64,000 nucleotides of DNA from Gekko japonicus (Eukaryota), in the NCBI RefSeq assembly GCF_001447785.1, contig NW_015161507.1, positions 95,555 to 159,554 of the forward strand. The letters are read 5' to 3'. Shown piece after piece: positions 10,128-56,390 of the stretch (positions within the stretch are counted from its first letter, which is position 1; every line of letters starts with the position of its first letter). Made by a program: the position numbers and the translations under genes. The notes beneath the pieces were generated by a model. The model did no database searches and was not told the DNA's origin. It worked only from the letters and a program-made list of their open reading frames with translations.

Positions 10128-10938
10128 TCTCTTTAGGATTACACTGTAAGGCAGTGCTTGCCCTGGGAATTTCTAGGAAGCACCCAGCAGTTCTTGGCCT
10201 TTTTTACAGAGCTGTCTTCCTTCCCCAGTGCTTAATGTATACGATTTGGGGCATGCTTTTCAACAACTCTGTAAAGTATTATTGGTGTGGATATAGCCCA
10301 TCTGTGCATGGCAAGCACAAGGAGTTTCCCCTCAGTTTTCTAGGCTGTTTTGGTTGCCAGAAAGATTATTCTGGGATAGCAGGATTTCAGCAGAGGAATA
10401 ACCATGCGGGTTGGTGGGCTGGAATGAGGAGGGATGGCCCTGTGTAAGAGGAAGCAGGAGTGATTTCACCCATATTCTTCCATGCTCCAGCACCCTCACC
10501 CAGCCTTTCCCTCCATGTGGGTCCTGCGACCCTGGGAATGATCTTTCGGGGAATCAGAAGGTTCTGCAGGAACAGAGAGGAACACAGGAACACTCTGTGT
10601 TCTGTACAATTTATAGTTAGGGGTCCACAACATTGTCTCCCTATTAAAGATGGAGGAGAGATCTGTCTTTAGAAAGAAGCCCATCCGTTGAGTTCATCAC
10701 AGAGCTGAGATTCAAATGGGACATTGGGTCTCATAGTCGCTTTGCTTTGTGACCTATTGAGTAGTGTTTTGTTCAAGGGGGGATAAAAAGAAATAGAGAA
10801 TTTCACGAGGGCAAAGGTATTTGATAAAAAAACAGGCTGAAAACAGAGGTGATTGTGATGCGATGAAGCTTGCTTTCATTCTTTGAATCTGTCTTGCCGT
10901 CCAGAAGAGTGGAGGCTGGCCGTGAACGGAGTGTGGAC

Positions 10939-11088
10939 ATGGAAGCAAGGACAGAAGCAGGAAACGGGAGGAGTGAGCAATTCTGGGGAAGAATTCGGCA
11001 GACCCTGGAAGAGGCTGTGGGCACCTCAGACGTACAGAGCCAGTTGTTCCAGCAGATCGGCTACCCGGATGCCAAGGGGCCCCAAGAG
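10939..11088 (+). CDS. ZNF gene 2: first coding segment, N-terminal part of SCAN domain
   Basis: Acceptor at 10903-10904; ATG at 10939; SDVQSQLFQQIGYPDAKGPQEVC resembles SCAN N-terminus (RQRFRQFxYQExxGPREVC); the phase-0 donor after 11088 is weak. Confidence 0.7.
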
Positions 11089-12984
11089 GTTTGCAACTGC
11101 TTCTGTCTATTTAGATATTTAGATGTCACATTCGTATCCTGCAGTTCCTCAAAGGAGCTCAGGGGACTTTCACTCCACCCCCTCTTTTTATCTTCACAGC
11201 TACCCTGGGAGGTAGGTTAAGCCGATAGGTCAATGAACCAGTCCTGCTGGGTTGTGATCCCTAGATTTTGTGTGTGTGTGTGGCAGCTTCTTGGAAGGAT
11301 CTTCTGATTGAGAGCAAATGTGCCACTTCTCTTTGCATGCATGCAGCAGGACTGTGTGACAAGGTCTTGTTAATTCAGTCCCCTTAAGCAAGAAGTTTCC
11401 TTTTGTCTTAGGGTTCTCCCTCCAGTGGGTACACAACTGTCAGTAGGAAAACGCAGACTTCAAAGTGTTATTGATATGAATTAAATGGTTTATTGAAAGG
11501 CATTACTGCATAATACACTACAAAAGCAAATGGCAACATCACAGAGATGCATGATACAGGAATACATGAAAAGGTACGGATAGAAAATGTTCAGTACAAT
11601 ACAGATAGTTACAAGACATAAAATAAGCCGGTACACAGGCAGTGTTGAAACATGAATAAATAAAGTATAATTCTAAACCAGTTCTACACCAGTAGAGGAC
11701 ACACTAGGTAGTGGAGACATGGACCACAAACCTTGTAAATATTTTTGAAACAAAAGGTTGCAAAAATGAGAACAAACTTAATGCATACTAGCCAATCTAA
11801 ATGTTAAACAATGAATTGCCACCCTACCACTCTTTTGCCCCTCTCGTTTTAGTGAGTTCTTAGCAAGCAAGCGATACAATTTAATAGCTACCTATCCAAA
11901 GAACCAGGAAGGATGCAGAGGCAAGACTCTCACAGGCTTGTGAGCCTCTCAGCCCTCAGACTCCTGGGAATTAGGAGGATGAGAGGGCACAGCAAAGCAG
12001 TCTGTGGCCTGGAACTACAACACAGGCCTGTCAAGGCCTGGAGTTCCTTGACCTTAGAAAGGAAAACTTGTAAAACAACATGCTCTGTCCCTATGGGAAG
12101 AACAAAAACTATCGGAATAAAGAACTCAAAAAATTTAGAAAAAACTGTTCAAACTAAGAAATGAATGGACCCCAAGGATTCCAAGTCCCAGAAATAGGTA
12201 GGTAACAGGATTGGGTCCACAAGCAAATGGATCCCAAGAAGCTAAAATCCCACCCTCACCTGAGGTCTTTATACCTGATGTTTGATCCAGGGTGGTTCCC
12301 ACACCTGTAGGATGGAGAAATAGGTGTGAACACGTAATTTCCCCTCATTTATTGTTTATTTTGGCACCTAAGGGACCAGATGTTCCTTTCTCATAACATC
12401 TTTCCAATATCCCAAAACAATATGCCAGATTGAACTCTTCTTATTGGTTGTGAGACTGGCCTTCTTGTTTGTCAGAGCTGCAGGTGTTCTCATAAGTCTT
12501 CAGACTCAGTTAGCAATCAGCAGTGCATGCTGGGCTTTTCATGTTTCAGGCTAGGGTTCAAAGAAAAGTACTCCTGAGAATCATGGCTGTGGATGCTGAC
12601 AGTTTTGGGGGGTGTCTTTCCCCCCTTATGTGTGAAATCCAGTCATGGCATCTCAGCAGCTGCTTAACGTAGCTTAGTTGGAAAAGTTAATATCCCAGAT
12701 GACACACTAGTTTCTGGGCTCCTTCATCTGAAATCCACAAATTTGCCCAAAGCCATTGGCACAGTCACACAAAATGGGATCAAATATCCAGCAACCCATG
12801 CTGCCTTTCACCCCGTAATATCATGTAGGGTCAAACATCATTGAGGTCTTCTCGTGGGAGGGGGGCTTCTGTTGTAAAAATCCATTTGAACAAGCTCCGA
12901 CGAGTGTGGGCAAGTTGCCCCCATTAACAAAAGCTCTCTGAATACTAAGAGGTGCTTTCCCAGTGTTTTACAGCTACTTGTGGT

Positions 12985-13192
12985 CAGTGTTCCCTCTAAG
13001 CTGAGTTGGTGTGAGTTGGCTCACAGTTTTTTAGCCTCCGGTTCACACGTTTTTGCCTTTGCTCAGGAAGGAGGGCTCCAGAGCAAGCTAGGTGTTATGC
13101 AGGAGCCAAATTGCTCGCTCACAACTTTAATGCTGGTAGCTCACAAAGTAGAATTTTTGCTCACTAGACTCCACAGCTTAGAGGGAGCCTTG
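12985..13192. mobile_element. hAT-type MITE (208 bp)
   Basis: TIRs cagtgttccctctaagctg / cagcttagagggagccttg; perfect 8-bp TSD cttgtggt. Confidence 0.9.
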
Positions 13193-14900
13193 CTTGTGGT
13201 TAGATGTTCCTCATGGAATGCACAACAGTCACTCGGTGCTGTACCATTGCAGCCTCAACAAAAGTCATAATTTCTGATGGCAAACTACACAGAAATCCAT
13301 TTTGCTCAAAGATGGCGGCTGTAACCAGGCCAAATCAGGGCCAAAAACGTACCAGATTAACAGGTCTCTTGGAAGTGGAGAGGATTCTTTTTCATCATGG
13401 CTGGGTTCAGAAACCCTCCTCCCTACAAAAGCACTCCTTGTCTTCTTGCTCTCCCTCCATCCCAAATCCGCACTCCCACCTGGTGATCCTTCAATGCCCT
13501 GCACGTGTCCTTGTGGTGTAAAGCCCCTGTCATGAGCCTAAGTCTAAGGCTGAGGAATGAGTGGCCTGTAGGCCTCAAAGAAGCCTCTGTTTCATATGAG
13601 CCTGTAGGCCTCAAGACAGCCTTTCCTCAGGCCTGGCTGCTAATTTCTCTGCAGGTTTACATTTCCCAAGCCTCAGAATTAGGCCTGGTAAAAATGGAGG
13701 GGAAACTGGCACCAACAGCTGTCTAGGAGGGAGAGAGCTCTAAAAGGGAGCATAAAAGGCCCTGCACAGAGAAGGACGGGATTTACTCCCTGAAGTCTAG
13801 CAGTAGTGAGGGCTGCTTTTGGAGGGAGATGATCCCTTCTTCCCCATGGTGGGGTGAGTGCGGCCTACTAGGGTCAGGTACTGAGACAGAAATAGGAACT
13901 AAGTGAAGGAGCCGTGTTAGGGAACTTTATTGTTTGCCAGTCAGATTCTTTTCTGTGTGTTTTTTGCCCTGTATAGTTGTAAAGTTACTGTATTAATTCT
14001 GCCCCACGTTTGTCTATTATTTACAAAATTTACATCCTGCCTTTCTGGCCTGACAAGGGCCACCAAGAGCTAACAATTAAAAACACACATGACTTGTGAC
14101 TGTACTTGCTACGGTATTTGCTGAATAAACCATCTCTTGTTCGCTCTGCCTGCGTTCTACATATTAAGGCCTGTGCTTGCCCCAGGTCTGAAGGGGGCAG
14201 GGAGCATGTGGGGAGGAAGGGATTCTTGGAAGGGATGCCCTGTCTGGGGCAAACCTACATGGCCCTGTACCATTCTATGGCAGTCCCATTCTCCACAGGA
14301 AACCTTTTTTTGTTTTAGGAAGAGCTCCACACAGTGAGGAGTGATAAATGACTGGCGGGGAGTTAGCTCTGGTGCAGAGAGAGAAGGCAAGGGAGAGTTT
14401 CTGACAGGAGAGAAGGGTCTCTGAACATCCCTATGCTGCTTGTTTCTCATTATGGTATGCTTCTCAGGATTGGGATGCCAGCCTCCAGGTGGGACCTGGG
14501 GATCTCCTGGAGTTATACCTCGTTTCCAGACTGCAGAGATCAGTTCCCCTGGAGAAAACAGATGCTTTGGAGGGTGGACTCTATGGCATTGTACCCCACT
14601 GCGGTCCCTGTCCTCCCCAGCCTCCATCCCCAAGTCTCCAAGAGTTCCCGAACCTGGATCTCACAACCCGCTGGTGGCCAGGGAGGACCTGTTCCTGACC
14701 CTCTTGGACTTTCCTGGCCTACGTGCCAGGACTTGATACTGGTGGGGGGCCATATGTCTGTGCCCGTCTTCCTGTCACACGATTCTGCTGTCACACAATG
14801 GTTTGCAACTTCCTGTCATGTGCTTGCCAGTCAGCGAGTCCACTGCTGCTCCCTAGTGATTAAAGCTGGGTCTTGGGTCTGTAACGTTTGAAGACCCAAC

Positions 14901-15103
14901 CAGTGTTCCCTCTAATCTGAGTTAGTGTGAGCTAGCTCTCAGTTTTTTAGCCTCTGGCTCACACATTTTTGTCTGAGGAAAGATGGCTCTAGAGCAGACT
15001 AATTTATATGCAGTAGCCAAATCGCTCGCTCACAACTGTAACGCCAGTCGCTCACAAAGTAGACTTTTTGCTCGCAAGACTCCACAGCTTAGAGGGAGCA
15101 TTG
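14901..15103. mobile_element. hAT-type MITE, same family
   Basis: Same TIRs; degenerate 8-bp TSD gacccaac/aactcaac. Confidence 0.85.
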
Positions 15104-15234
15104 AACTCAACAGTTAAGGGGGAGAGAAAGCGACTAAGCCAAGGCCAGCCAGTGAGCTTAATGGCTGAGAGGGCTTTTGAACCAGGGTCATAGTCTGACA
15201 CGTTGATCCTTTGCATGCATGTTTTTGCTATCAG

Positions 15235-15435
15235 TTGCTGCCTGCAGAGAAGCCCGTAAGGAAGCAGATCCTGGAGTTGGTGATCCTGGAGAAGTTCCTG
15301 GCCGTCCTTCCTCAGGAAATGCAGTGCTGGGTCAGGAAGTGCGACCCCGAGACTTACGACCAGGCAGTGGCCCTGGCAGAAGTCTTCCTGTCAAGGCACC
15401 AACAAAAGGAGGAGGAAGTGAAGCAAAGGGAGCAG
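15235..15435 (+). CDS. ZNF gene 2: C-terminal part of SCAN domain
   Basis: [40 protein letters not shown] is the SCAN signature; tcag acceptor at 15234; phase-0 donor cag|gtgaga. Confidence 0.88.
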
Positions 15436-16309
15436 GTGAGAATGCGTTGCCCTTACAGCCCTGAGAGGTGATGGATGAGCATGAAAAGCACCTCTTCTAT
15501 TGAGAAACCTTCAACGTGGGGGATGGCCAAGGCCTAGATGTTGGTCTAAACGTGTCTGAGGTAGCACCACTGCTTGAAGTTAAGCAGACATGTATCTGGT
15601 CAGTCCTCTGAACAGGAAGCTTTTGATCAGCCTCACATAAAAGTTTGGTACAAACAATAATGTGTGGTGTTTTTTTAAGCATTGGCCAACTGCAGATATG
15701 TAGGCCTTGTTGTCCCTTCAAAATAGCTTAAGTGGCCATTGTAAATGTTTATAATGTGGTGGTTGTCAAATATTCTCACCTTTAAACTATTTTAATCCCT
15801 TTGTTTTTTTAATCCCACCCTGCTCAGGGTGGCAGTTGTGGTACTCCCCTCCCCCATCTTGTCTTCCAACAGTGGTCGTGAGGTAAACTTGGCCGAGAGG
15901 CGCCAGGGACTGCCCTCAGGGTCACCCAGTGAGTTCAGTGGCTCAGGATGGGTTTGTACCCAGGCCTCCCTAGTCTAACCACTACTTCCCTGCACTGGGT
16001 CTTAATTTTAAAAAGGAGAGTCCAGTCTGTGTTTGTACTGCTCTGCCAATCTGAACGGGTCTTTCGAGAAGTGGGTTTGTTCTTCTATATCTCCCATCGT
16101 CAACCTTGTGCAGGGAAGACTGACTAAGATTTGTGTTTACGCATACGCTATCCCACTTGCAGCCTTCTGCCAGTCAGGTTGTGCTCTTGAGTCTGTCCCT
16201 GTGAGATATCAGGCTACTAGAAGCCTCTGTTTCGATCAATATCTCTCGGATGTAAGTCTCTGAAAGCCAAAGCTGAAAGTCAGATACATCACAATTTTGA
16301 CTCTTGATA

Positions 16310-16445
16310 AGGGGCTGTGGCTTCGTGGTAAAGCATCTGCTTGCCAGGCAGAAGGCCTGAGGTTCAATCGGCATCTCCAGTTGAAGGACCAAGCAGAAGG
16401 TGGTACGAAAGACCCCTGCCTGAGACCCTGGAGAGCCACTGCTCG
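16310..16445 (+). mobile_element. tRNA-derived SINE head
   Basis: ggggctgtggcttcgtggtaaagc (A box) and ggttcaat (B box), running into the gap. Confidence 0.7.
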
Positions 16446-16905
16446 NNNNNNNNNNNNNNNNNNNNNNNNNNNNNNNNNNNNNNNNNNNNNNNNNNNNNNN
16501 NNNNNNNNNNNNNNNNNNNNNNNNNNNNNNNNNNNNNNNNNNNNNNNNNNNNNNNNNNNNNNNNNNNNNNNNNNNNNNNNNNNNNNNNNNNNNNNNNNNN
16601 NNNNNNNNNNNNNNNNNNNNNNNNNNNNNNNNNNNNNNNNNNNNNNNNNNNNNNNNNNNNNNNNNNNNNNNNNNNNNNNNNNNNNNNNNNNNNNNNNNNN
16701 NNNNNNNNNNNNNNNNNNNNNNNNNNNNNNNNNNNNNNNNNNNNNNNNNNNNNNNNNNNNNNNNNNNNNNNNNNNNNNNNNNNNNNNNNNNNNNNNNNNN
16801 NNNNNNNNNNNNNNNNNNNNNNNNNNNNNNNNNNNNNNNNNNNNNNNNNNNNNNNNNNNNNNNNNNNNNNNNNNNNNNNNNNNNNNNNNNNNNNNNNNNN
16901 NNNNN
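16446..16905. other. Assembly gap (460 N)
   Basis: Run of N, followed by minisatellite-bearing repeat. Confidence 0.98.
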
Positions 16906-17520
16906 GTGTGGCCTAATGTGCTAATGAGCTATGCTCTCATGGGTGTGGCTGGATATGCTAATGAGTTTCTGTTGTTGGGTGTGGCCTATTATGCTAATGA
17001 GTTCCTGCTGGGCTTTTTCTACAAAAAAAGCCCTGCAAATAAGTATGAGATGCAAGTTTTGTATGAGCTGCCATGATGGTTGGTGGTAATGGCTAATTTT
17101 AGAAATGGTTTCTTAAGTTCCTGTTTACTTTGACAACTTTATGGACTGGGTTTTTATTTTATAAAGAGAAGTAAAACAAGTGTCAAGTGACACCTTAAAG
17201 ACTAACAGAAATTTATTCCAGCGTCAGCGTTTGTGAGTGAGAGCTCATTTGATCAGGTACACAAAGTGGACGACCATTAGGCCTCTGATGAATTGAGCTC
17301 TGACTCAGCAAAGTTTATGACGGAATAGATGGTGTTAATCTTTAAGATGTTGCTGGATTCCTAGCTTGGTTATCCATCTGACATTATTTTAAAACTGATT
17401 GTTTATATTGGCTGTCATGTTTATTGTATGGTGAATCACTTTTTGTTTTAAGCATAAAAGAACTCTATACATTTGATAAAGTTAATGATCAGGCGTGGTT
17501 TAAAAAACACCTTCTTGTGA

Positions 17521-17700
<180 letters not shown>

Positions 17701-19374
17701 TGAGGCCTGCATTCCTCTCCTTGAAAATTCCCCACCCCCCTTATACTAGAGTGATGTTGACAATGAAACGGGTTGCTTGTGCCGCATAGCCTTTTCATGT
17801 AACGATTGTTGGGTCAGGCACCAATGTGAGTTTATCCAGCATCTGAGTCGCTTTCATACATGTTGCATAATGCACTTTCAGTGCACTGTGCTGCTGGATT
17901 TTACTGTGTGAAATGGGAAAATCCTCTTGCAAACAATTGCTAAAGTGGATTGAAAGTGCATTATTCCTTGTATCAAAGCATCCTTTGTCTTTTCTAAATA
18001 AGCTTCAAATAAGCTTTTTGAAAACCTGGCTTTAAAAGCAAAGTTGTTCCATAGCTAAGAACTGAATATAGAATTAGTTCCAAAAACTTGCCTTTGGACC
18101 CTTGAAAGCACAACTGAGAACTAAATGCTTCCCTCCCATCCAGAATTTTCTAATAATCAGAGTCCCTTGAATTGTCATGTAGCCTTGTTTCAGATTCTTT
18201 TTTTTAAATTTTATTGTATTGAAGAACTGAATTACAAATAAAGATTACAATTTTAGCTAGTAACATATACGTGTTTCTTACATCACAATGTCTTCTTTTT
18301 TTGGATAGGTGTACATATATGTTTTTAATTGTTTTAAGAATTTACAATAGAAGCTTCTTTTCTTCTGTCTTTTCAGTTCTTCTGTCTTCTCAGTATTAAC
18401 CTATACTGCATTTTAAGCAAAACTTTTCAGCATAGCCACAAAACTAAAACAAAATACACAGGCTCAAAACCAGTCATAGTACTTCTTACTCTATTCTTCT
18501 TTGAACTTGAGTTCAGTCCGAGGGGGGCCCATGTTTCAGATTTTTGAGTAGTTGGGCGGGGCCGGGATCACAACCGTTTTGGATTGCACTTTGCCTAAAT
18601 TCAGACCTCACTTTTAACCTTGGCTAAAGAAAAATGTGTGTGAACCCCATTTAATGCTGGGCTTGCACATATCTTACTCCTTCCCCTTGCCTTCTTGCAT
18701 GTAACTCACTCTGGTGTGAGTTGATGTGCTAATGCAGGTATGCACGTGAACCAGACTTAATCTCCCCTCTCCCACCCCACCTGGGATTCTAAACCAGAGT
18801 TGGTTTGAGGCTTAGAATCCTGGCTGGTGGGGGCTGGGGGTGGTAGAATGAGTTTTCATTTCATGTGCATTGCTGTACATCCTGGGATCTGAAGTTAATT
18901 TCCGTGATTTTTCTGCACAAGAGCATAGTATGCGTGTGACCCTGGCAAAAAGCCATGTGTGCGTGTGTTTATGCACAATTTTCTTAAAGGGAATGTCTGA
19001 AGACATCCCACTGAGTCCTCTCTTTTGAGACAGAAGTGTATAACAGCGCCATCCTAAGCAGAAATGCACCCTGCTGAGTTCGGTGAAGTCAGTGGGCATA
19101 TAATGTCATACAGTGGGCATGTGTGTTTCATATGCACTTCACCACAGCTGTACCGCCATCGCTATGTAAATTGTTTTACTAATTATGTTGTGTTATGTTA
19201 TACTGATATTTATATTGTTATTTTATCTATTGCTTTCTTGTGTAAGCCACCCTGAGCCTGCCTTAGCGGGAAGGGTGGGGTAAAAATCAAATAAATAAAT
19301 AAATAAATAAAATATAAGGGTGTAACTCTGCTTAGGGCTGCGATGCACTGGTTCAGTGTTGAATGGAAAGGGAG

Positions 19375-19580
19375 CAATGTTCCTTCTAAGCTGTGGAGTC
19401 CTGTGAGCAAAAATTCTACTTTGTGAGCCGCTAGCATTGAAGTTGTGAGCAAGCGATTTGACTGCTACATAAATTAGTTTGCTCTGGAGCCCTCCTTCCT
19501 GAGCTAAGACACAAATGTGTGAGCCGGAGGCTAAAAACCTGTGGGCTAGCTCACACTAACTCAGCTTAGAGGGAACACTG
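19375..19580. mobile_element. hAT-type MITE, present in duplicate copy 1 only
   Basis: TIRs caatgttccttctaagctg / cagcttagagggaacactg; TSD aaagggag/gaagggag; single empty site gaagggag in copy 2 (about 21219). Confidence 0.92.
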
Positions 19581-19644
19581 GAAGGGAGTAGGGATAACCG
19601 CTTCTGTGGTGGGTATTGCTGACAATATCCTGATTTTGTCCCAG

Positions 19645-20075
19645 GATATAACACCTGTGTGCTGGAATATGAGGAGAACTGTTGGCAGAAAAGACCCAAA
19701 GAAGCGGATGTTGATGAAAGACTGGTAGAAGGATCTGAAGGGAAATGTTTCTGGGACCCTGCAACGCGGTCAAAGCCTGAAAGAAAGCTGGCGACAGACA
19801 GTCACCAGAACGATCATGAGGAGTATAAACCAAAACTAGCCTTGCTTTGGCGGGAAGATGCTGGGAATGTAGAGACGGACGAAGGACTCCTAAAGCGTGA
19901 AACACAGAGGGACCAAGACTGTGACAACAAATTTTGTCAGAGCGCGACGTTTGTCAGGAATCCACGAATGGCAGAAAAAGCGTATATCTGCTCATGCTGT
20001 GGGCAGATATTCCAAGGGACGTCCGCTTTGCTTGTGCACGAGAGGACTCAAATTGAAGAACTGAATTACAAATAA
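19645..20075 (+). CDS. ZNF gene 2: truncated duplicate of the terminal exon (one finger lacking its last His)
   Basis: Phase-1 acceptor ttttgtcccag; ends HERTQIEELNYK* across the duplication junction. Confidence 0.55.
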
Positions 20076-21282
20076 AGATTGCAATTTTAGCTAGTAACAT
20101 ATACGGGCTTCTTACATCACAATGTCTTCTGTTTTTGGATGGGTGTACATATACGTTTTTAATTGCTTTAAGAATTTACAATAGAAGCTTCTTTTCTTTC
20201 TACTATCTCTTCAGTTCTTCTGTCTTCTCAGTATTAACCTATACTGCATTTTAAGTATTTTAAGCAAAACACTTCAGCATAGCCACAAAACTAAAACAAA
20301 ATACACAGGCTCAAAACCAGTCATAGTACTTCTTACTCTATTCTTCTTTGAACTTGAGTTCAGTCCGAGGGGGGCCCATGTTTCAGATTTTTGAGTAGTT
20401 GGGCGGGGCCGGGATCACAACCGTTTTGGATTGCACTTTGCCTAAATTCAGACCTCACTTTTAACCTTGGCTAAAGAAAAATGTGTGTGAACCCCATTTA
20501 ATGCTGGGCTTGCACATATCTTACTCCTTCCCCTTGCCTCCTTGCATGTAACTCGCTCTGGTTATCCTTGATGTGCTAATGCAGGTATGCAGGTGAACCA
20601 GACTTAATCTCCCCTCCCCCACCCCACCTGAGATTCTAGACCAGAGTTGGTTTGAGGCTTAGAATCTTGGCTGGTGGGGGCTGGGGGGTGGTAGAATGAG
20701 TTTTCGTTCCATGTGCATTTCTGTACATCCTGGGATCTGAAGTTAGTTTCTGTGATTTTTCTGCACAAGAGCATAGTATGCGTGTGACCCTGGCAAAAAG
20801 CCATGTGTGCGTGTGTCTTTATGCACAATTTTCTTAAAGGGAATGTCTGAAGACATCCCACTGAGTCCTCTCTTTTGAGACAGAAGTGTATAACAGCGCC
20901 ATCCTAAGCAGAAATGCACCCTGCTGAGTTCGGTGAAGTCAGTGGGCATATAATGTCATACAGTGGGCATGTGTGTTTCATATGCACTTCACCACAGCTG
21001 TACCGCCATCGCTATGTAAATTGTTTTACTAATTATGTTGTGTGTTATTTTATATTGATATTTATATTGTTGTTTTATCTGTTGCTTTCTTGTGTAAGCC
21101 GCCCTGAGCCTGCCTTGGCGGGAAGGGTGGGGTAAAAATCAAATAAATAAATAAATAAATAAAATATAAGGGTGTAACTCTGCTTAGGGCTGCGATGCAC
21201 TGGTTCAGTGTTGAATGGGAAGGGAGTAGGGATAACCACTTCTGTGGTGGGTATCGCTGACCATATCCTGATTTTGTCCCAG

Positions 21283-22058
21283 GATATAACACCTGTGTGC
21301 TGGAATATGAGGAGAACTGTTGGCAGAAAAGACCCAAAGAAGCGGATGTTGATGAAAGACTGGTAGAAGGATCTGAAGGGAAATGTTTCTGGGACCCTGC
21401 AACGCGGTCAAAGCCTGAAAGAAAGCTGGCGACAGACAGTCACCAGAACGATCATGAGGAGTATAAACCGAAACTAGCCTTGCTTTGGCAGGAAGATGCT
21501 GGAAATGTAGAGTCGGATGAAGGACTCCTGAAGCGTGAAAGAACACAGAGGGACCAAGACTGTGAAAACGAATTTTGTCAGAGCGTGACATCTGTCAGGA
21601 ATCCCCGAATGGCAGAAAAAGCGTATATTTGTTCATGCTGTGGGCAAATATTCCAAGGGACTTCCGCTTTGCTTGTGCACGAGAGGACTCACATAGCAGA
21701 GAGAATATATAAGTGCTCGCAGTGTGGGAGGAACTACTCTTGTCATTCTGACCTCCTTGTGCACCAGAAGAGCCATGCGGGAGAAGACCCACACCGGTGT
21801 GCTTTGGACTGTGGCAAATGCTCTAGTCGGCATGCCCCTCTGCCCCCGCACCAGGGAGCCCATCCGGAAGAGAAGGTAAGCAGGTGCCTCGAGTGCAGGA
21901 AAAGCTTTGGCAGTAAATGGCAGCGCCATCAGCAAAAGAAACCCCATACGAGGGAGAAACAAAATGAGTGCTTAGAATGTGGGGAAAGGTTCAAATGGAA
22001 GGCCTCCCTTGCGAGGCACTCTGTGCTGAGGCAAAGCCTTATGAGAACCATGCTCTGA
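21283..22058 (+). CDS. ZNF gene 2: terminal exon with 2-3 intact and 2 degenerate C2H2 fingers
   Basis: Phase-1 acceptor at 21281-21282; CSCC..HERTH, CSQC..HQKSH and CALDC..HQGAH, then degenerate CLEC units. Confidence 0.8.
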
Positions 22059-22152
22059 GCTTGGGCCCCACATCCATATGGTTTCTAAGTCCACAGAGAG
22101 GAGGGATGTCTTAGCTGCAGTCACCATGAGAGCAGCTTTAGCCAAAGATCCC

Positions 22153-22200
22153 GTTGTTGTTGTTGTTGTTGTTGTTGTTATTATTATTGTTGTTGTTGTT
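22153..22200. repeat. (GTT)n/(ATT)n microsatellite
   Basis: Directly visible. Confidence 0.95.
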
Positions 22201-22616
22201 CCATTCCACCCTGACCAAATCTAAAAGGAGACTTTTGTGGCATCTGCAAGGCCATGACGGATTTATAGTCGCATAAGAGAAAGTAGGGTTCGCTCAGGAA
22301 AACCTATTGCTGCAATAAATCTGCTAGGTTTGGTCATGCACGCAGGAGAATGAAGTGGGGACACCGATGCCCTGAAGGAGTGGCATTCTGGCTCTAGATA
22401 TTTTCTTTTCAGTAGCAAAACAAACCCCACCCTCCACTCTCTGCACGCGAGAAAGCTAGCACAGCAGGGAGAAAAATTCTGTTCTCCTTTTTTACTTGCA
22501 TGCTGGCTTTCTCTTTGCAAGGAGTGATTAATTAATTATCGTATGGCATTGTGTGTAGCATAGACAGGAGATCCTAAGATTGTCTGACAGCCGGAAGCTC
22601 TAGCTCTTTTAGTGGT

Positions 22617-22636
22617 ATGCACCACTAGGGGGCGAG
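22617..22636 (+). promoter_or_regulatory. CTCF-like motif
   Basis: gcaccactagggggcgag matches the CTCF core CCAC/GYAGG/AT/GGGCG. Confidence 0.6.
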
Positions 22637-22658
22637 CTAGACTTGTTTTTAGGCCAGA

Positions 22659-23279
22659 GACAGTTCAGAGCTGGTTTGCCGTTTCCCGCCTCTGCGTAAC
22701 AGCCCTGGTTATTCCTTGGAGGTCGCTCTTCCAGTTCCTAGCCATGGCTGTCCCAGCTTAACTTCCGAGATCTGATGAGACTGAGCTAGCCTGGGCTATC
22801 CCAGTTGGGGGTGTTTAACAAAGGACAGCATTCTCAAATGGTGACGCTCTCCTGCAGTTCGATTTTTTTTTAAAAATGTATATCTTGCGTCTCTCCCTAA
22901 TTGGGACCCAAAATGCCTTACCAGAACATTCTCCTTTGCTCACTCTACAGTCACACCAAGAAACTTGCAAGACAGTTCAGAGCTGGTTTGCCGTTTCCCG
23001 CCTCTGCGTAACAGCCCTGGTTATTCCTTGGAGGTCGCTCTTCCAGTTCCTAGCCATGGCTGACCCAGCTTAACTTCCGAGATCTGATGAGACTGAGCTA
23101 GCCTGGGCTATCCCAGTCGGGGGTGTTTAACAAAGGACAGCAATCTCAAATGGTGATGCTCTCTTGCAGTTTGATTTTTTTTAAAAATGTGTATCTTGCT
23201 TCTCTCTAATTGGGACCCAAAATGCCTTACCATAATATTCTCATTTAATCACTCTACAGTCACACCAAGAAACTTGCAA
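22659..23279. repeat. Tandem duplication of about 311 bp containing an antisense 5S-derived SINE
   Basis: Units start at 22659 and 22971 (gacagttcagagctggtttgcc). Confidence 0.88.
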
Positions 23280-23444
23280 GGTACGTTAGGCTGAGAGAAT
23301 GTGACAGGTCCAAGGTAATCCAGTGAGAGGCAGAGCAGGGATTCAAACCTTGGTTGTCCTTGTTCCACACTCTGATCACTGCACCACACTGGCTCTCAAC
23401 TGCAGTTCTGTTCATAGGGTGTGTGTGTGTATGTATTAGTATTG

Positions 23445-24012
23445 GAAAAGGTGCAGAAAAGGGCAACTAAAAAGATGAAGGGGATGGCACACCTTCCTTA
23501 TGAAGCTTAGGGGTCTTTAGCTTGGAGGAGCGACGGTTGAGGGGTGACATGATAGAGGTTTACAGAATTATGCATGGGATAGAGAAAGAAGTACTTTTCT
23601 CCCTTTCTTACAATACAAAAACTCGTGGGCATTTGGCTGTCCCTGTTCCACAAACCTTGGCTGTCCTTGTTCCACACTCTAATCACTGCAACACAGGCTC
23701 TCAACTGCAGTTCTGTTCATAGGGGTGTGTGTGTATGTATTAGTATTGGAAAAGGTGCAGAAAAGGGCAACTAAAAAGATGAAGGGGATGGTACACCTTC
23801 CTTATGAAGCTTAGGGGTCTTTAGCTTGGAGGAGCGACGGTTGAGGGGTGACATGATAGAGGTTTACAGAATTATGCATGGGATAGAGAAAGAAGTACTT
23901 TTCTCCCTTTCTTACAATACAAAAACTCGTGGGCATTCAATGAAATTAATGAGCAGTAGCCTTAGAACAGATAAAGGAAGTACTTCTTCACCCCAAAGAG
24001 TAATTAACACCT
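23445..24012 (+). mobile_element. CR1 LINE 3' fragment, tandemly duplicated (about 304-bp unit)
   Basis: LEERRLRGDMIEVYRIMHGIEK and TRGHSMKL are CR1 ORF2 C-terminal motifs; present twice. Confidence 0.88.
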
Positions 24013-24092
24013 GTCCAAAGTGCCGCATCACAATCCTTTGCCCCTTCTCCACTTCCCATGACGCTTTAACTGTTTTCCTTTCTGTCTTTCAG

Positions 24093-24872
24093 CCCTCCAT
24101 CTCTGGAATAACAAAGAGGTCAGCCACCACCAAGGAAGTTTCACATGCAAAGATAGGTCTCTCTGAGCCAGATGATAGTGCACCCAAGAGGTTACGGGCT
24201 CAGGGGCGGTTGACAAAGGCAGGCGAGGCGTGGAAATCTGCAGACGGAGCCCAAGAAGACAAGGCACAGGCCGGGGATGCGTTGCGATTGCGGTTCCCTT
24301 GTGGAAAGTGCCGCATCACAATCCTTTGCACCTGCTCCACGTCCCATGATGCTTTACCTGTTTTCCTTTCTGTCTTTCAGCCCTCCATCTCTGGAATAAC
24401 AAAGAGGTCAGCCACCACCAAGGAAGTTTCACATGCAAAGATAGGTCTCTCTGAGCCAGATGATAGTGCACCCAAGAGGTTACGGGCTCAGGGGCGGTTG
24501 ACAAAGGCAGGCGAGGCGTGGAAATCTGCAGACGGAGCCCAAGAAGACAAGGCACAGGCCGGGGATGCGTTGCGATTGCGGTTCCCTTGTGGAAAGGGAA
24601 AGAAAACGGCTGACTGCAGCGTCAGTGACGTGGATGACGCGTTCTCCGTGGCTGACCGGTATCTTCCTGCTGCTCCTTCCTCTGACGACGATGCCCCTTC
24701 CTCACCTTGCAGATCGATCGCCAGCTCTCTTGACTCCTCGCTGAAAGATGAGCATGTGACCCACCCTCTGGAGCACGCTGCTGGCATCGAGGTGGGAACA
24801 CTCCCTGTTCTGAAATCTGAACAGGTTCATCATAGGCAGGAGGAGTTCAGTGTGGAACACGGCACACCTTCA
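24093..24872 (+). CDS. Putative upstream coding exon of the hAT/ZBED gene (low-complexity N-terminal region, includes 288-bp duplication)
   Basis: Strong acceptors ttttcctttctgtctttcag at 24092 and 24380 (both phase 0); open frame; phase-0 donor tca|gtgagt at 24872. Confidence 0.5.
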
Positions 24873-24876
24873 GTGA

Positions 24877-27588
24877 GTGGAACAGACAATGACAGAGTCG
24901 CTGGGGATACCGTGGTACATTCCAGTATCACGGCAGTCCACGCGAAAGATGCAGCATGCTCTGATCCTCCGTACTCAACATGGTCAGACCCTGCACAAAT
25001 GCCGCCATCTAGCAATGAAAGCACCCCCCTCAGTTTCCACACAAGCAACATGGTCGGACCCTGTGCAAATGCCACCATCTAGTGATGAAAGCACCCCCCT
25101 CAGTTTCCACACAAACTTCCACCAGGAAAAAAGGGCAGAGTCAATGCAGACACCTCAGGCCTTCATAAGGAACACCGCGAGTGAAATCTGTGCGCCCGCA
25201 GAAGGGTGCCCGGCTGTCTCCGGCATCTTCATGCGACAGAGGAAGAATGCATCCTACGTGTGGAAGTTCTTCCGCCGTGCGCCCAACGATAGATTCGTGG
25301 TCGTTTGTCAGGAGTGCCACGCGAGGGTGCGTCTTGGGAAGGAGAATGGATGTGGAAAGGTCGGCACTTCGGCAATGAGGAAGCACATGGAGGTGCATCA
25401 CTCGAACCTCATTCCTCAGCAGCAGGGCGTGGCTGACTTTGGGGCGGCCGGTGCAGCCAGCAAAGTAGCGATAGAGGCTTCCACGGCTGAGCAGATGTAC
25501 CATTCTCCAGGAGGACAGTCTTCCTCGCCATCTTCCGCGATGTGTCACCAGCTTAACATCGAGGAATCGTTTTGCCTCAAGGCCCCCGTCGGTGTGTCAA
25601 CTCTTCAGGCAGCTCACTACACCCGTGGCGTGGCCGCATACCTTGCCGAAGCGATGCTTCCGTTCAGCACGGTGGAGGAAAGGTCGTTCGTCGATCTTTG
25701 TGCAGCCTTCGCACCACAGTGGAGGATTCCATCCAGACGCTATTTTGCCACAAAGGTCATTCCGGCATTGGCAGAAGACATTAAGGGAGCCGTGTGCCGA
25801 GGCATGCAGAGAGCCGTAGGGCGGGTAGTGCACTTCACCAGCGGTGTGTGGACGAGCAGTCGGGACGAGTGTTACCTTTGCGTCACGGCACACTGGGTGG
25901 GGTGCAATGCCGTGGGAGCGCTTGAGCACTGGGACGCCACTCTGGTTCTGGAGCCGTTGACACAGAAGCACGCCGCTAACCACGTCTTGACTGAACTGCG
26001 GTCCTTGGTGGAGGAGTGGCTGTCTCCCCTCAGTCTGAGACTGGGGAGCATCACGACCGGCAACGGTTCGATCTATGTGAAGGCTTTCCGAAATGCAGCC
26101 TTTTGCCACATCCGATGCATAGCTCACTGCTTGAACCTGGTGGTGACGGCAGCGTTACAGCTGGCGCCGGCGTGTGTCAGGACAGTCGTGGACCTGGCAT
26201 GCAAAATTGTTGGTCACTTCCACAACTCTAGCAACGCACAGGAAGCCTTGAGAAGGATTCAGGTGAGGAGAGGCGTTCCTCAGCATAGGCTTCGCCGAGA
26301 GGTTGGCGTACATTGGAACGGCACTCTGCACATGCTCCAGAGACTGTGCGAGCAGAAGGAGGCCGTTAATGAGTATGTGTGCAAGAAGGACTACGGCAAC
26401 CTCCAAGTCCGCCCTGATCAATGGGTTTTAATGCACAACATTGCAGATTTACTGTACTCCTTTGACGAGTGCACGGGACTTTTGAGCCACAGCGATGCCA
26501 CTCTGGGGACGGTTCTCCCTGTGATCCATGTGATAACAGCTGACGTTCAGGAGAAAATAGCCTCCTTTGCTAGTGGCCCCATGGCATCCCTGCCATCAGT
26601 GGCCTTCGGGAACACGGTGCTCAAGCAACTGACCAAAAACAAGCAGCTGCGCGCCATGTCTGTCAGCGTCAGGTACCACGCAGCCACGTTTCTCGATCCA
26701 CGGTTCAGAGACAAAATCAGGAGCTACCTGGGGGAGAGTGCGGAAGAGAATTACAATGCGTTGCATGCCTACATTTTGGAGCAGACGACGCCCTACTGCC
26801 GCGAGCGAGCTGCGAACGCGCGGCGTGCCGAGTCTGTGGCGGGGGAAGAGATCGTGTCCCAGGACAGACTTTTCTTTGAAAGAGCCCTGCAGAACAGCCA
26901 AAGCTCCGTCTTCTCGAGAGGAGTCCTAAAACTGGGTCTCTGTGGTCCTACACCCCGCCCAGTCAGGCAAAACACATTCCTCGAGCAGGAGCCCGAGGTC
27001 AGCGCCCAACAAGAACTCGAAGCGTATGTCAGCGACGAGATTCCGGTGGAGTTCTTGCTGCCCGACAGCAACCCATTGCATTATTGGGAAGGAAAGTGCG
27101 GCGTGTGGCCGTGCCTGTCTTCCGTGGCCATCAGTACACTGGCCTGCCCTCCGACTAGCATTCCCTCTGAGCGCCTTTTCTCCACTTCCGGCAAAGGCGT
27201 GGCAAAGCTTCGGACCCAGCTGTCTCCCGCTGGTGTTTCCGCTCTGTCCTTTGTACGGTCAAATAAAAAATGGATCCCGAGCGAGCACTGCCCTCCAGAA
27301 TGCACCAGTGACGATTACGCACCACCTCCGCCTGCTGATGCCACCGTGGCGGAGTACAGCCTGGATGAAGAGGATGCTGTCTCTGTTATACTGGAGCCGC
27401 TTGTGCCTAACGAAGCGATCCCGAGCGAGCACTGCCCTCCAGAATGCACCAGTGACGATTACGCACCACCTCCGCCTGCTGATGCCACCGTGGCGGAGTA
27501 CAGCCTGGATGAAGAGGATGCTGTCTCTGTTATACTGGAGCCGCTTGTGCCTAACGAAGCGTCCTGTGAGCTGGAGGAAGATGTGTGA
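24877..27588 (+). CDS. hAT-family transposase-derived ZBED-like protein (BED finger, RNase H-like core, hATC dimerisation motif), probably catalytically inactive
   Basis: SYVWKFF..CQEC..GTSAMRKHMEVHH (BED); LPFSTVE..F; IPSRRYF; RCIAHCLNLVV (CxxH); HWNGT; ATFLDPRF; PLHYW; PPTSIPSERLFS. True start unresolved (ATG at 25144 or spliced entry at 25126). Confidence 0.93.
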   Translation: MEQTMTESLGIPWYIPVSRQSTRKMQHALILRTQHGQTLHKCRHLAMKAPPSVSTQATWSDPVQMPPSSDESTPLSFHTNFHQEKRAESMQTPQAFIRNTASEICAPAEGCPAVSGIFMRQRKNASYVWKFFRRAPNDRFVVVCQECHARVRLGKENGCGKVGTSAMRKHMEVHHSNLIPQQQGVADFGAAGAASKVAIEASTAEQMYHSPGGQSSSPSSAMCHQLNIEESFCLKAPVGVSTLQAAHYTRGVAAYLAEAMLPFSTVEERSFVDLCAAFAPQWRIPSRRYFATKVIPALAEDIKGAVCRGMQRAVGRVVHFTSGVWTSSRDECYLCVTAHWVGCNAVGALEHWDATLVLEPLTQKHAANHVLTELRSLVEEWLSPLSLRLGSITTGNGSIYVKAFRNAAFCHIRCIAHCLNLVVTAALQLAPACVRTVVDLACKIVGHFHNSSNAQEALRRIQVRRGVPQHRLRREVGVHWNGTLHMLQRLCEQKEAVNEYVCKKDYGNLQVRPDQWVLMHNIADLLYSFDECTGLLSHSDATLGTVLPVIHVITADVQEKIASFASGPMASLPSVAFGNTVLKQLTKNKQLRAMSVSVRYHAATFLDPRFRDKIRSYLGESAEENYNALHAYILEQTTPYCRERAANARRAESVAGEEIVSQDRLFFERALQNSQSSVFSRGVLKLGLCGPTPRPVRQNTFLEQEPEVSAQQELEAYVSDEIPVEFLLPDSNPLHYWEGKCGVWPCLSSVAISTLACPPTSIPSERLFSTSGKGVAKLRTQLSPAGVSALSFVRSNKKWIPSEHCPPECTSDDYAPPPPADATVAEYSLDEEDAVSVILEPLVPNEAIPSEHCPPECTSDDYAPPPPADATVAEYSLDEEDAVSVILEPLVPNEASCELEEDV
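27273..27560 (+). repeat. Exact 144-bp (48-aa) in-frame tandem duplication in the acidic C-terminal tail
   Basis: IPSEHCPPEC...PLVPNEA occurs twice. Confidence 0.95.
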
Positions 27589-44385: not shown

Positions 44386-46257
44386 TTCTCCCTCTGATGT
44401 GGAGGACATCCTGTGTGGGTGATTCCCATCCATCTTCAAGGGAGGCAGGAACTTACTAAGAACTTCCTGTTTCCTGTGGTGGGAGTCACCCCTACTCCAG
44501 TTCGTTTCCTGCCTCAAGAGGGAGAGCAGCTAGTTTAGGCTTTGCCTGCACTGATCTTGCCTTTGTCCTTTCTAACCTTTGTTCTTCCCTTCTTTTCCCC
44601 TTTAGGTATCTCAACCTCCTTTAGGCATTTCATCCTCCTTTGATCTTAAATCCTTGGTTCTTCCTTTCCAAAAAAAAAAAAAACAACAACCCCCCCCCTC
44701 TCCTTCTCCCATTTCGAAGCCTGAGCTCCGCTCCAGGTTTTTCCTCCTGCCGCATCTCTCCTCCTCCTATTTCGAAGCCTGAGCTCCGCTACAGGTTTTC
44801 TCTTCTGCCGCTGAGCCGCGGAAGCCGAGCAAACACTCCGTGAGCCATGGAAAGGGCCGCGGAAGACGACGGCTTCCTTATCCTCCCGGGAGCAAAGACG
44901 AAGACCGCGAAAGGCAAGCGCGCGGCCGCGAATGCCTACGGAGAGCCGCCGATGACCCGAAGCGCGAAGAGAGACGCGAGAGGAGCCTCGGCCTCGGGGG
45001 TCGCGGCGGCCATTTTGAAGGCGCCTTTGTCTGGCGCGATCGGCTCGGGGGGCGCTTCGACTGGCCGATCCCCACCGAAATCGCCCGCTAAGGCACATGG
45101 GCGACTCTTGGGCTCTGCTGCGGCACACGAGCACATCCCCGGCCCGGCTACGGCCCATGGGCACCTAAAGGGCTCCGCCACGGCAACCAGCCACCGGGAT
45201 GCCGGGACCTCGACGCATGGTGGAAGCGGAGAGGAGGAGGAGGAGGAGGAGGATGACGGCGCCGAGGACGTGGACGGGACCGAAGGAACCAGGACTGGTG
45301 ATGTACCCCCCCGCGGCCCCCCCTCCCTAACCCCAGAGGCCATGGAATTTTTGCGCCAAACCATAAGGGCAGAGATGGGTCGGGAAAAAGGGGGCAAAAA
45401 GAGACCTAGGCTTCCTTCCCCAGACCCCAACTGGCCAACACGCCCCGCCCCCCGGCCGCCTAAGGCACCGAGGAATAGCCACAGGCCACATGTGGTCCTC
45501 CAGGACCGGGAAGAGGGGGAATACAGTCCACAGGACTCCAGTGTAGAAGGGGAGGAGGAGGACGAAGATGAAGAGGAATTTTCCTCAGGGGAGGAGGGGG
45601 AGAAGGCCCCGAGACCGCCTCCACAAGATCAGTCACACCGCTTCTTCCAGGCGGAGGACTTCCCATATCTCCTATCCAAAACCTTATCCGCCTTGCATAT
45701 TCAAAATGCCAGAAGCGCACCACTGGACACTAAGGACGGGGTAGACGAGGGGGAGGGGGATGAGGTAACAGCCGAATTTTTTCCACCTGTGGATTACTCC
45801 GAGCTAGCCTTCCCCTTTCCGGCCTTTTACGTAAGAAAAATCAAATCTGAATGGGAGAGACCCATGTCCTATAGATCATACCCCGCATCACTTAAGAAGC
45901 TATACCCCACCACCTCCGCAGCGTCTAAGATGCTCAAGCTGCCAACGGTTGACGCACCAGTGGCAGCCCTCCACTCATCTAACCTGGTGTCGGAGGAAGG
46001 TCAGGGAAACCCCCGCAATGGCATGGATAAGAAAGCTGAGCTAATTCTTAAGAAGGCCCACGAGGCAACCGCAATGGCCATTAAATCCTCGGCGGCGGCA
46101 TCCACAGTCTCAAGGGCGGCTATAGTCTGGATGCGCAAACTGATCCAGTTATTACCAGAGAATGACGCCAGACTGATGGAGGGGGCTTCTAGGGTACTAA
46201 AAGCCATTTCCTATACAGCAGACGCCACCCTGGACTCAATGGTTTTCTCATCGCAAG
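44386..46257 (+). mobile_element. 3'-truncated DIRS1-like tyrosine-recombinase retrotransposon with open gag/ORF1 (44847-46295)
   Basis: LPTVDAPVAAL..DKKAELILKKAHEA..A..AAST resembles the DIRS1 gag/LAP2alpha-like domain; DIRS-like left terminus ttctccctctgatgtggaggacatc; CpG-rich. Confidence 0.78.
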
Positions 46258-46300
46258 CAGAGTGTGGATTTGAATCTGGGTCTCCCAGAGCCTAGCCTGA

Positions 46301-51954: not shown

Positions 51955-56390
<4,436 letters not shown>

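Follow-up and report, generated by a model that had tools for sequence, protein, structure and literature searches.

Fusions between host genes and transposases have been catalogued across tetrapods by Cosby et al. (bioRxiv 10.1101/2020.05.07.082677). The catalogue contains KMARD3a/b of Anolis, in which KRAB, SCAN and four C2H2 zinc fingers (ZF_C2H2 x4) are joined to a mariner transposase; KHATD1 of turtles, which consists of KRAB, zf-BED and hAT; and HATDG2 of snakes and HATDG3 of Pogona, which combine SCAN and BED. The age of KRABINER, a fusion found in bats, was given as 27-45 million years (My) in the same work. A gecko hAT fusion is not in its supplementary table, and no paper naming the gecko LOC/XP identifiers described below was found in a literature search. 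In the present study, a 64,000-nucleotide stretch of DNA from Gekko japonicus (contig NW_015161507.1; hereafter the window) was analyzed, the + strand of which carries a cluster of SCAN/KRAB zinc-finger genes. One of these, a SCAN-KRAB-C2H2 gene, is followed on the same strand by an open reading frame (ORF) with BED and hAT transposase domains at 25126-27588, as an earlier reading of the sequence alone (the sequence-only reading) had pointed out. The locus probably holds the Gekko orthologue of a host-transposase fusion gene that is gecko-wide.

A protein search with the transposase piece of the window (25126-27585) as the query retrieved annotated orthologues from three other geckos: Paroedura picta LOC143834203 (P0001; 1356 aa, 85% identity), Eublepharis macularius LOC129329364 (P0002; 1347 aa, 80% identity), and Sphaerodactylus townsendi 'ZBED4-like' (P0003; 1206 aa, 79% identity). 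An orthologue search in related geckos had been proposed as a check in the sequence-only reading, and all three models, 79-85% identical, were found behind the same host exons. Each of them contains SCAN or KRAB or both, together with BED and hAT, in a single ORF, and Pfam matches to SCAN, KRAB, zf-BED, and Dimer_Tnp_hAT occur together in P0001 and P0002. In tblastn, the three proteins mapped exon-wise onto 10939-11088 (E1), 15235-15435 (E2), 17539-17665 (E3), 21283-21875 (E4), and 24381-27588 (E5) of the window; the gene model for the window was assembled exon by exon from this mapping, not as one joined protein. E4 up to a donor in its interior is present in all three orthologue models, and KRAB too in two of them. 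Accordingly, host and transposase domains lie in one spliced ORF, the definition of a fusion used by Cosby et al., in the three orthologue models.

The junction between the host and transposase parts could be placed to the nucleotide. The lengths of E1 to E4 (150+201+127+593) correspond to 357 codons, which is the residue at which P0001 switches from host to transposase sequence. The residues at the junction are HPEEK/PSISG in Paroedura, HPAGK/LSSSG in Eublepharis, and HLAEK/PSVSG in Sphaerodactylus. At this position, the window has a strong phase-0 donor within E4 (GAGAAG/gtaagc, 21875/21876) and an acceptor ending in tttcag; the acceptor, ttttcctttctgtctttcag followed by CCC, lies before 24381, and a second copy of it lies before 24093. 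Thus, GT and AG sites in matching phase are also found in the window, though the window ORF is broken by a 70-bp duplication. From the codon sum of E1 to E4 and the GT/AG sites at the junction, the transposase is therefore predicted to be a terminal coding exon reached from a donor within the zinc-finger exon. To judge from these sequences, the predicted product is SCAN-KRAB-3×C2H2-linker-BED-hAT, not SCAN-BED. The sequence-only reading had already regarded the transposase as the terminal exon of a host gene rather than a free transposon, and the three gecko models bear this out through the very acceptor that it noted. It had also proposed that the phase-0 SCAN donor at 15435 is spliced to the acceptors at 24093 or 24381 to yield a SCAN-linker-BED-transposase protein. 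These consensus-like sites were all located in the sequence, but the orthologue models instead leave the host gene at the internal E4 donor 21875, and KRAB and three C2H2 fingers belong to the fusion in those models.

The sequence between the acceptor and the BED finger forms a linker of ~250 open codons, which contains no Met in the window and no conserved Met among the orthologues. The first part of the terminal exon (E5; 24381-24872, + strand, 492 nt) encodes this Met-free linker. In tblastn, the identity to the orthologues was 78-84% in the hAT part, 54-65% in the linker, and 58-72% in the zinc-finger exon. The KRAB exon is 80-91% conserved, and the three fingers are conserved among the orthologues, as expected if both belong to the fusion product.

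The host exons on the + strand were delimited as follows. E1 (10905-11088), identified by tblastn of P0001, P0002, and P0168 and from the sequence, carries the protein start and the N-terminal part of SCAN. Its ATG at 10939, from which the exon measures 150 nt (10939-11088), is the start codon of the Paroedura and Eublepharis models. P0168, a 315-aa Gekko japonicus model annotated as 'neurotrophin receptor-interacting factor 1-like' and retrieved by a protein search with the zinc-finger exon, reaches E1 from an upstream exon via an acceptor before 10905. The E1 donor at 11088 (CAAGAG/gtttgc) is weak. E2 (15235-15435, 201 nt), identified by Pfam, tblastn, and splice sites, encodes the C-terminal two-thirds of SCAN and ends in a phase-0 donor (GAGCAG/gtgaga at 15435); the Pfam match to SCAN lies inside 15211-15471 (E 1e-17). 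The SCAN domain is split by the 4.1-kb intron 11089-15234, and 'CFC'-containing remnants flank this intron on both sides. An assembly gap (16446-16905) lies within intron 2, between the end of E2 at 15435 and the start of E3 at 17539. It does not conceal an exon of the conserved model, since residues 50-117 and then 116-160 of P0001 map continuously in tblastn.

E3 (17539-17665), identified by Pfam, sequence, and tblastn, encodes the KRAB-A box and ends in phase 1; the Pfam match to KRAB lies inside 17521-17703 (E 3e-25). KRAB-A is thus found on its own 127-nt phase 0/1 exon and is followed by C2H2 fingers, which is the arrangement of a KRAB zinc-finger protein. The statement of the sequence-only reading that the KRAB-A donor, being phase 1, is incompatible with the transposase acceptor is correct, but it is irrelevant to the actual junction. 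E4 (21283-21875, 593 nt), identified from the sequence and by tblastn, is the junction exon to the transposase and encodes a spacer and, ahead of the internal donor, three fingers with the pattern C-x2-4-C-x12-H-x3-H; weak Pfam matches to C2H2 lie inside 21297-22058. Downstream of the donor, 21876-22058 is a remnant of the old zinc-finger array, with an AATAAA at 22314. Intact fingers were not found in this tail, and its CpG observed/expected ratio of 0.36 is intron-like. A switch of the locus between two products, KRAB-ZNF and SCAN-BED, as had been suggested from the sequence alone, finds no support. The tail after the E4 donor is without an intact finger, and the sole short form seen is P0168, which ends in a truncated duplicate of E4.

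The transposase-derived ORF (25126-27588, + strand, 2463 nt) was characterized by Pfam, alignments with Hermes and with the family, AlphaFold2, and Foldseek. An ORF of 903 codons in this region (24877-27588) contains both zf-BED and Dimer_Tnp_hAT. The zf-BED match (E 5e-6) is above the curated cut-off, and the BED finger at 25255-25401 is close to invariant across the four geckos. The hAT dimerisation domain at 27013-27264 (Dimer_Tnp_hAT, E 1e-11) aligns with Hermes residues 513-602. The first catalytic Asp, corresponding to Hermes D180, is replaced by Gly in the window (25843-25845). It is lost in all four geckos (Gly, Ala, Gly, and Gly), and the DDE-intact relatives P0004 and P0012 have Asp. 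At the position of the second Asp, the window has Gly (26059-26061) and Eublepharis has Asn; Paroedura and Sphaerodactylus retain Asp. The catalytic Glu is retained at 27169-27171, as are the CxxH motif and the Trp; the intact D-D-E triad of an active hAT transposon is not present in the window. In agreement with the sequence-only reading, terminal inverted repeats (TIRs) were not seen flanking the transposase ORF, where inverted-repeat pairs occur at chance level only, and ends of an active hAT element, with TIRs and an 8-bp target-site duplication, were not found there. CR1-like sequence, by our own reading, adjoins the 5' side of the transposase. The AlphaFold2 model of the single-copy transposase part reached a predicted local distance difference test score (pLDDT) of 82 and a predicted TM score (pTM) of 0.75. 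Its best Foldseek matches were Hermes transposase chains (E 5e-18; TM 0.70-0.74 on target), and the predicted model has the Hermes-like fold of an RNase-H-like core with an inserted all-alpha domain. An IATP Pfam match (27 bits) on the ORF 23826-25082 was dismissed as low complexity doubled by a 288-bp duplication. The CpG observed/expected ratio was 0.72-0.86 over the 2.4-kb transposase ORF versus 0.21-0.36 in the introns, so that the properties of a CpG island are found within a coding exon.

In order to trace the descent of the transposase part, 1.84 billion cluster representatives were searched exhaustively with HMMER, and 8234 relatives were obtained. Each annotated gecko contributed one sequence per 90% cluster, and the best match after the gecko cluster (80%) showed only 40% identity. 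Near-identical copies elsewhere, which the sequence-only reading had named as a sign against a fusion, did not appear among these protein matches. In a maximum-likelihood tree of 34 proteins, computed without a ZBED4 or ZBED6 reference, the gecko clade received 100% support. Its topology, (Eublepharis,(Sphaerodactylus,(window,Paroedura))), is identical to the accepted relationships of the gecko families concerned. The gecko stem is long (0.81), and the branch of the window is short (0.07) in comparison with that of Paroedura (0.10). The clade is nested in a squamate-only group, in which the next relatives are ≤40% identical. Across the 771 columns common to the four geckos, in-frame indels are the sole length differences, and private substitutions are fewest in the window lineage (20 versus 31, 50, and 51 in the other geckos). 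Constraint is thus seen at the protein level in the form of intact ORFs, in-frame indels only, and 78-85% identity. On the basis of the compared sequences, the fusion is common to Eublepharidae, Sphaerodactylidae, and Gekkonidae and is vertically inherited, because the gene tree equals the species tree of the geckos and the closest protein beyond the clade shares only 40% identity. We date the fusion at roughly 100 My. The sequence-only reading had spoken of a lineage-specific squamate fusion; the fusion itself stands, and the scope, which was too vague, is narrowed by the tree to these three families. Vertical descent, the loss of the first Asp in all four geckos, and the failure to find TIRs together point to a domesticated host-transposase fusion.

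These observations suggest the following course of events. A BED-hAT transposon would have inserted just downstream of a SCAN-KRAB-C2H2 gene before the split of Eublepharidae, Sphaerodactylidae, and Gekkonidae. Splicing would then have linked the donor within E4 (21875) with an acceptor that precedes the transposase ORF (at 24381, with a duplicate at 24093), and the remaining zinc-finger array would have decayed. Judging from the orthologue models, the product would comprise SCAN, KRAB-A, three C2H2 fingers, a disordered linker of ~250 aa, BED, and a complete, catalytically dead hAT body with its dimerisation domain. By analogy with the named domain families, it probably represses transcription in a sequence-specific manner. 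DNA binding would be the task of the BED finger with the aid of the C2H2 fingers, the co-repressor KAP1/TRIM28 would be recruited through KRAB, and SCAN and the hAT C-terminal domain may mediate oligomerisation.

As in the fusions of Cosby et al., the DNA-binding domain of a transposase is spliced in the gecko gene onto KRAB/SCAN zinc-finger exons, with the acceptor just upstream of the transposase and clade-wide conservation. The gecko gene differs from them in being a separate capture in a separate clade and in retaining the whole transposase body, not only the DNA-binding domain. Furthermore, the donor lies within the zinc-finger exon, so that three fingers are kept beside SCAN and KRAB. 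KRABINER of vespertilionid bats (KRAB-ZNF112 plus mariner) shares with the gecko gene a KRAB-ZNF host, the addition of a transposase at the 3' end as a new coding exon, and the prediction of a sequence-specific repressor. However, KRABINER is young, mariner-derived, and an alternative isoform of an intact parent, whereas the gecko gene is hAT-derived and spread over three families, and its finger array has decayed. With the Hermes transposase (PDB 4D1Q, 2BW3, and 6DWZ), the window shares, in the predicted fold, the RNase-H-like core, the all-alpha insertion domain, and the C-terminal domain, and the CxxH, W, and SERxFS motifs of Hermes also occur in the window. On the other hand, the identity to Hermes is ~19%, two catalytic Asp residues of D-D-E are aligned to Gly, and transposon ends were not found.

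In the tree, the gecko transposase part has an iguanian sister clade (100% support). It includes a SCAN-BED-hAT protein of Sceloporus undulatus (P0008; LOC121921799, 1430 aa), a RING-BED-hAT protein of Phrynocephalus (P0009), and a plain BED-hAT protein without host domains from Sceloporus ('ZBED4-like', P0010); a further plain BED-hAT protein without host domains comes from Sphaerodactylus ('ZBED6-like', P0013). P0008, P0009, and P0010 resemble the gecko gene in their architecture from BED to the C-terminus, in the '...WIP..H..P.C..D' tail, and in catalytic impairment. In contrast, they are 35-40% identical to it, have a non-homologous linker, and are devoid of KRAB and C2H2. The catalytic losses also differ, being Glu to Lys in P0008 and the first Asp in the geckos. 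The iguanian and gecko proteins represent either separate captures of one transposase lineage or one very old domesticate. Because different catalytic residues were lost and the linkers are not homologous, the evidence points to separate captures. A single ancient SCAN capture shared with P0008 is possible but unsupported: the linker is non-homologous, the catalytic losses differ, and the SCAN domains are only 46% identical. P0008, P0009, P0010, and P0013, each with its own pattern of catalytic loss, may constitute a series of independent domestications.

Several findings weigh against the assignment of the window to a working fusion gene. The three orthologue models are Gnomon predictions, which were possibly mutually informed by cross-species protein evidence. 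No Gekko protein model for the hAT part was among the protein-search matches of the transposase piece. Instead, P0168 matches the window at 100% over E3 and the truncated E4 copy and at 98% over E1 and E2, with one mismatch each (tblastn); its last coding exon is the truncated E4 copy, so that it is a short SCAN-KRAB protein with its stop at 20075. In addition, the frame that starts at 24381 halts at a TAG (25080-25082) owing to the 70-bp duplication. Finally, SCAN lacks ~11-12 residues of its N-terminal half where E1 meets E2, both in the window and in the Paroedura and Eublepharis orthologues. The missing residues correspond to the '...ALSRLRELCRQ...' region of typical SCAN domains, and the stretch is present in the SCAN of P0008. 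The dimerisation capacity of the gecko SCAN is uncertain because of this shortening.

The gene carries several tandem duplications in the window. A duplication of ~1.8 kb (18218-20050 and 20052-21691; copies 95-97% identical) covers the end of intron 3 and the first 406 nt of E4 and has produced the truncated E4 duplicate (19645-20075, + strand; self-BLAST 95%, tblastn of P0168), which has kept the E4 acceptor and ends in a stop codon at 20073-20075. Three AATAAA motifs are located at 21142-21158. Owing to a 288-bp duplication (24017-24596, +, 98%), both the acceptor (24093 and 24381) and the initial 212 nt of the transposase exon are present twice. In the 70-bp duplication (24976-25045 and 25046-25115, +), which causes the frameshift, the copies have seven differences, six of which are CpG transitions. 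A 144-bp duplication (27273-27561, +) is 100% identical and in frame and doubles the acidic C-terminal tail, of which the orthologues have one copy. Intron 4 contains two duplicated segments (22658-23280 and 23344-23937; 95-98%), by which the coding sequence is unaffected. Within 5 kb (22658-27561), the short tandem duplications number five; their units measure 70-313 bp and are 90-100% identical. The dating of the 70-bp duplication was dropped, because the differences are too few and their pattern also fits two diverged haplotypes laid in tandem.

The sequence-only reading had removed the frameshift by an intron at 24873-25125. The four segments of its chain (150, 201, 492, and 2463 nt) are indeed all multiples of 3 and free of stops. 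This candidate rescue intron (+) has GTGAGT and CAG at its ends (donor TCA/gtgagt at 24872; acceptor cttccaccag before 25126) and contains the 70-bp duplication. However, the orthologues read through the equivalent region, which comprises 58-61 poorly conserved residues of variable length, and the equivalents of GTGAGT and CAG are plain coding sequence in them (VSG... and ...FHQ/E). As 70 is not a multiple of three, the frame change that had been read as an intron is caused by the duplication. The intron is thus needed only for the 70-bp duplication, which is possibly an assembly artefact. The Gekko duplications may have arisen in the assembly or may be recent lesions of the gene, and for those of 70, 144, and 288 bp an artefact and a real duplication appear about equally probable. 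Provided that the duplications are real, for only then are the simulations valid, neutral drift over the divergence of the intronic duplicates (3.0%) left the ORF intact in ~2% of simulations, and drift at the divergence of the 70-bp copies left it intact in 0 of 2000. If they are real, therefore, this low neutral survival means that the ORF is still under selection, and a bypass such as an intron is favored. It is quite unlikely that the duplications are real, that a newborn intron at 24873-25125 removes the 70-bp frameshift, and that the truncated E4 copy also switches the locus between the 315-aa SCAN-KRAB protein and the long fusion. Were this the case, coding sequence would have turned into an intron and rescued a domesticated transposase.

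The alternative explanations of the locus were weighed against these data. That the transposase is a recent or active hAT copy merely downstream of a zinc-finger gene might be suggested by its complete BED and hAT ORF and by its GC content, which is above that of the surroundings. However, TIRs were not found, catalytic Asp residues have been lost, the same host exons precede the orthologues in three other geckos, the gene tree agrees with the species tree, and nothing above 40% identity was found beyond the orthologues in the HMMER search, so that this possibility is effectively refuted. The locus might also consist of two adjacent genes, one of the SCAN-KRAB-ZNF type and the other a domesticated ZBED-like gene with expression of its own; the Gnomon fusions would then be read-through products or prediction chimeras. 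The fusion models are indeed predictions, a separate short SCAN-KRAB model is annotated in Gekko japonicus, and the sister clade includes domesticated BED-hAT proteins to which no host domain is joined (P0010 and P0013). Nevertheless, the same junction is seen in three species with consensus GT/AG sites in matching phase, the ~250 codons from the acceptor to BED are open without a conserved Met, and the zinc-finger tail past the donor has decayed to an intron-like composition. A true fusion is preferred on the indirect evidence of this shared junction, the open Met-free linker, and the decayed tail, and two separate genes are unlikely.

Two further alternatives accept a fusion and differ as to its product. 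The main transcript may skip the KRAB and zinc-finger exons and join the SCAN donor 15435 to the transposase acceptor, which would make the transposase an alternative terminal exon of the KRAB-ZNF gene. Both sites are in phase 0, the chain is in frame and stop-free, and SCAN-only BED/hAT fusions are known from other squamates (P0008 of Sceloporus; HATDG2 and HATDG3 of the Cosby supplement). However, this junction is used in none of the three orthologous gecko models, and the conservation of the KRAB exon (80-91%) and of the three fingers speaks against their being skipped; such a transcript is very unlikely as the main one. Alternatively, the fusion may be dying in this species, in which case the 315-aa truncation and the broken linker would be signs of decay and the transposase ORF a young pseudogene. 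The structural lesions, duplications of ~1.8 kb, 288 bp, 70 bp, and 144 bp, agree with this idea, as do the loss of the second catalytic Asp in the window and the stop of the annotated model at 20075. On the other hand, the 763-codon single-copy part is without a stop or frameshift and has fewer private changes than Paroedura, and an ORF would survive neutral drift so rarely (the ~2% and 0 of 2000 given above) that decay is unlikely too, though it keeps some weight. From the slow-evolving, intact transposase ORF, it is therefore argued that the long product of the gecko-wide fusion gene is still made in Gekko japonicus.

The locus represents an old, clade-wide capture of a transposase by a KRAB/SCAN zinc-finger gene from geckos, a group without a catalogued hAT fusion. 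Five regulatory or DNA-binding modules, SCAN, KRAB, C2H2, BED, and the hAT oligomerisation body, are stacked in the predicted product. The retention of a full but catalytically dead transposase fold and the capture through a donor within a zinc-finger exon are unusual. Events of this kind are well known, and NCBI already lists the orthologues as 'uncharacterized' loci, although they are apparently undescribed in the literature. Since the same transposase lineage is joined to SCAN, to RING, or to nothing in iguanians, it offers a natural series for the study of repeated capture. The window also illustrates that short tandem duplications can mimic frameshifts and 'rescue introns'.

Two other ORFs on the + strand of the window were recorded. 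An ORF of 482 codons (44847-46295), situated in a GC-rich stretch, has a Pfam match to LAP2alpha (E 1e-8, residues 315-470), and its N-terminal half is long, acidic, and of low complexity. An ORF of 1191 codons (51970-55545) encodes a very long, regular C2H2 array with an 84-nt unit, the copies of which are 75-92% identical; the periodicity of this array alone explains why the other frames and the opposite strand of 51970-55545 also contain long ORFs.

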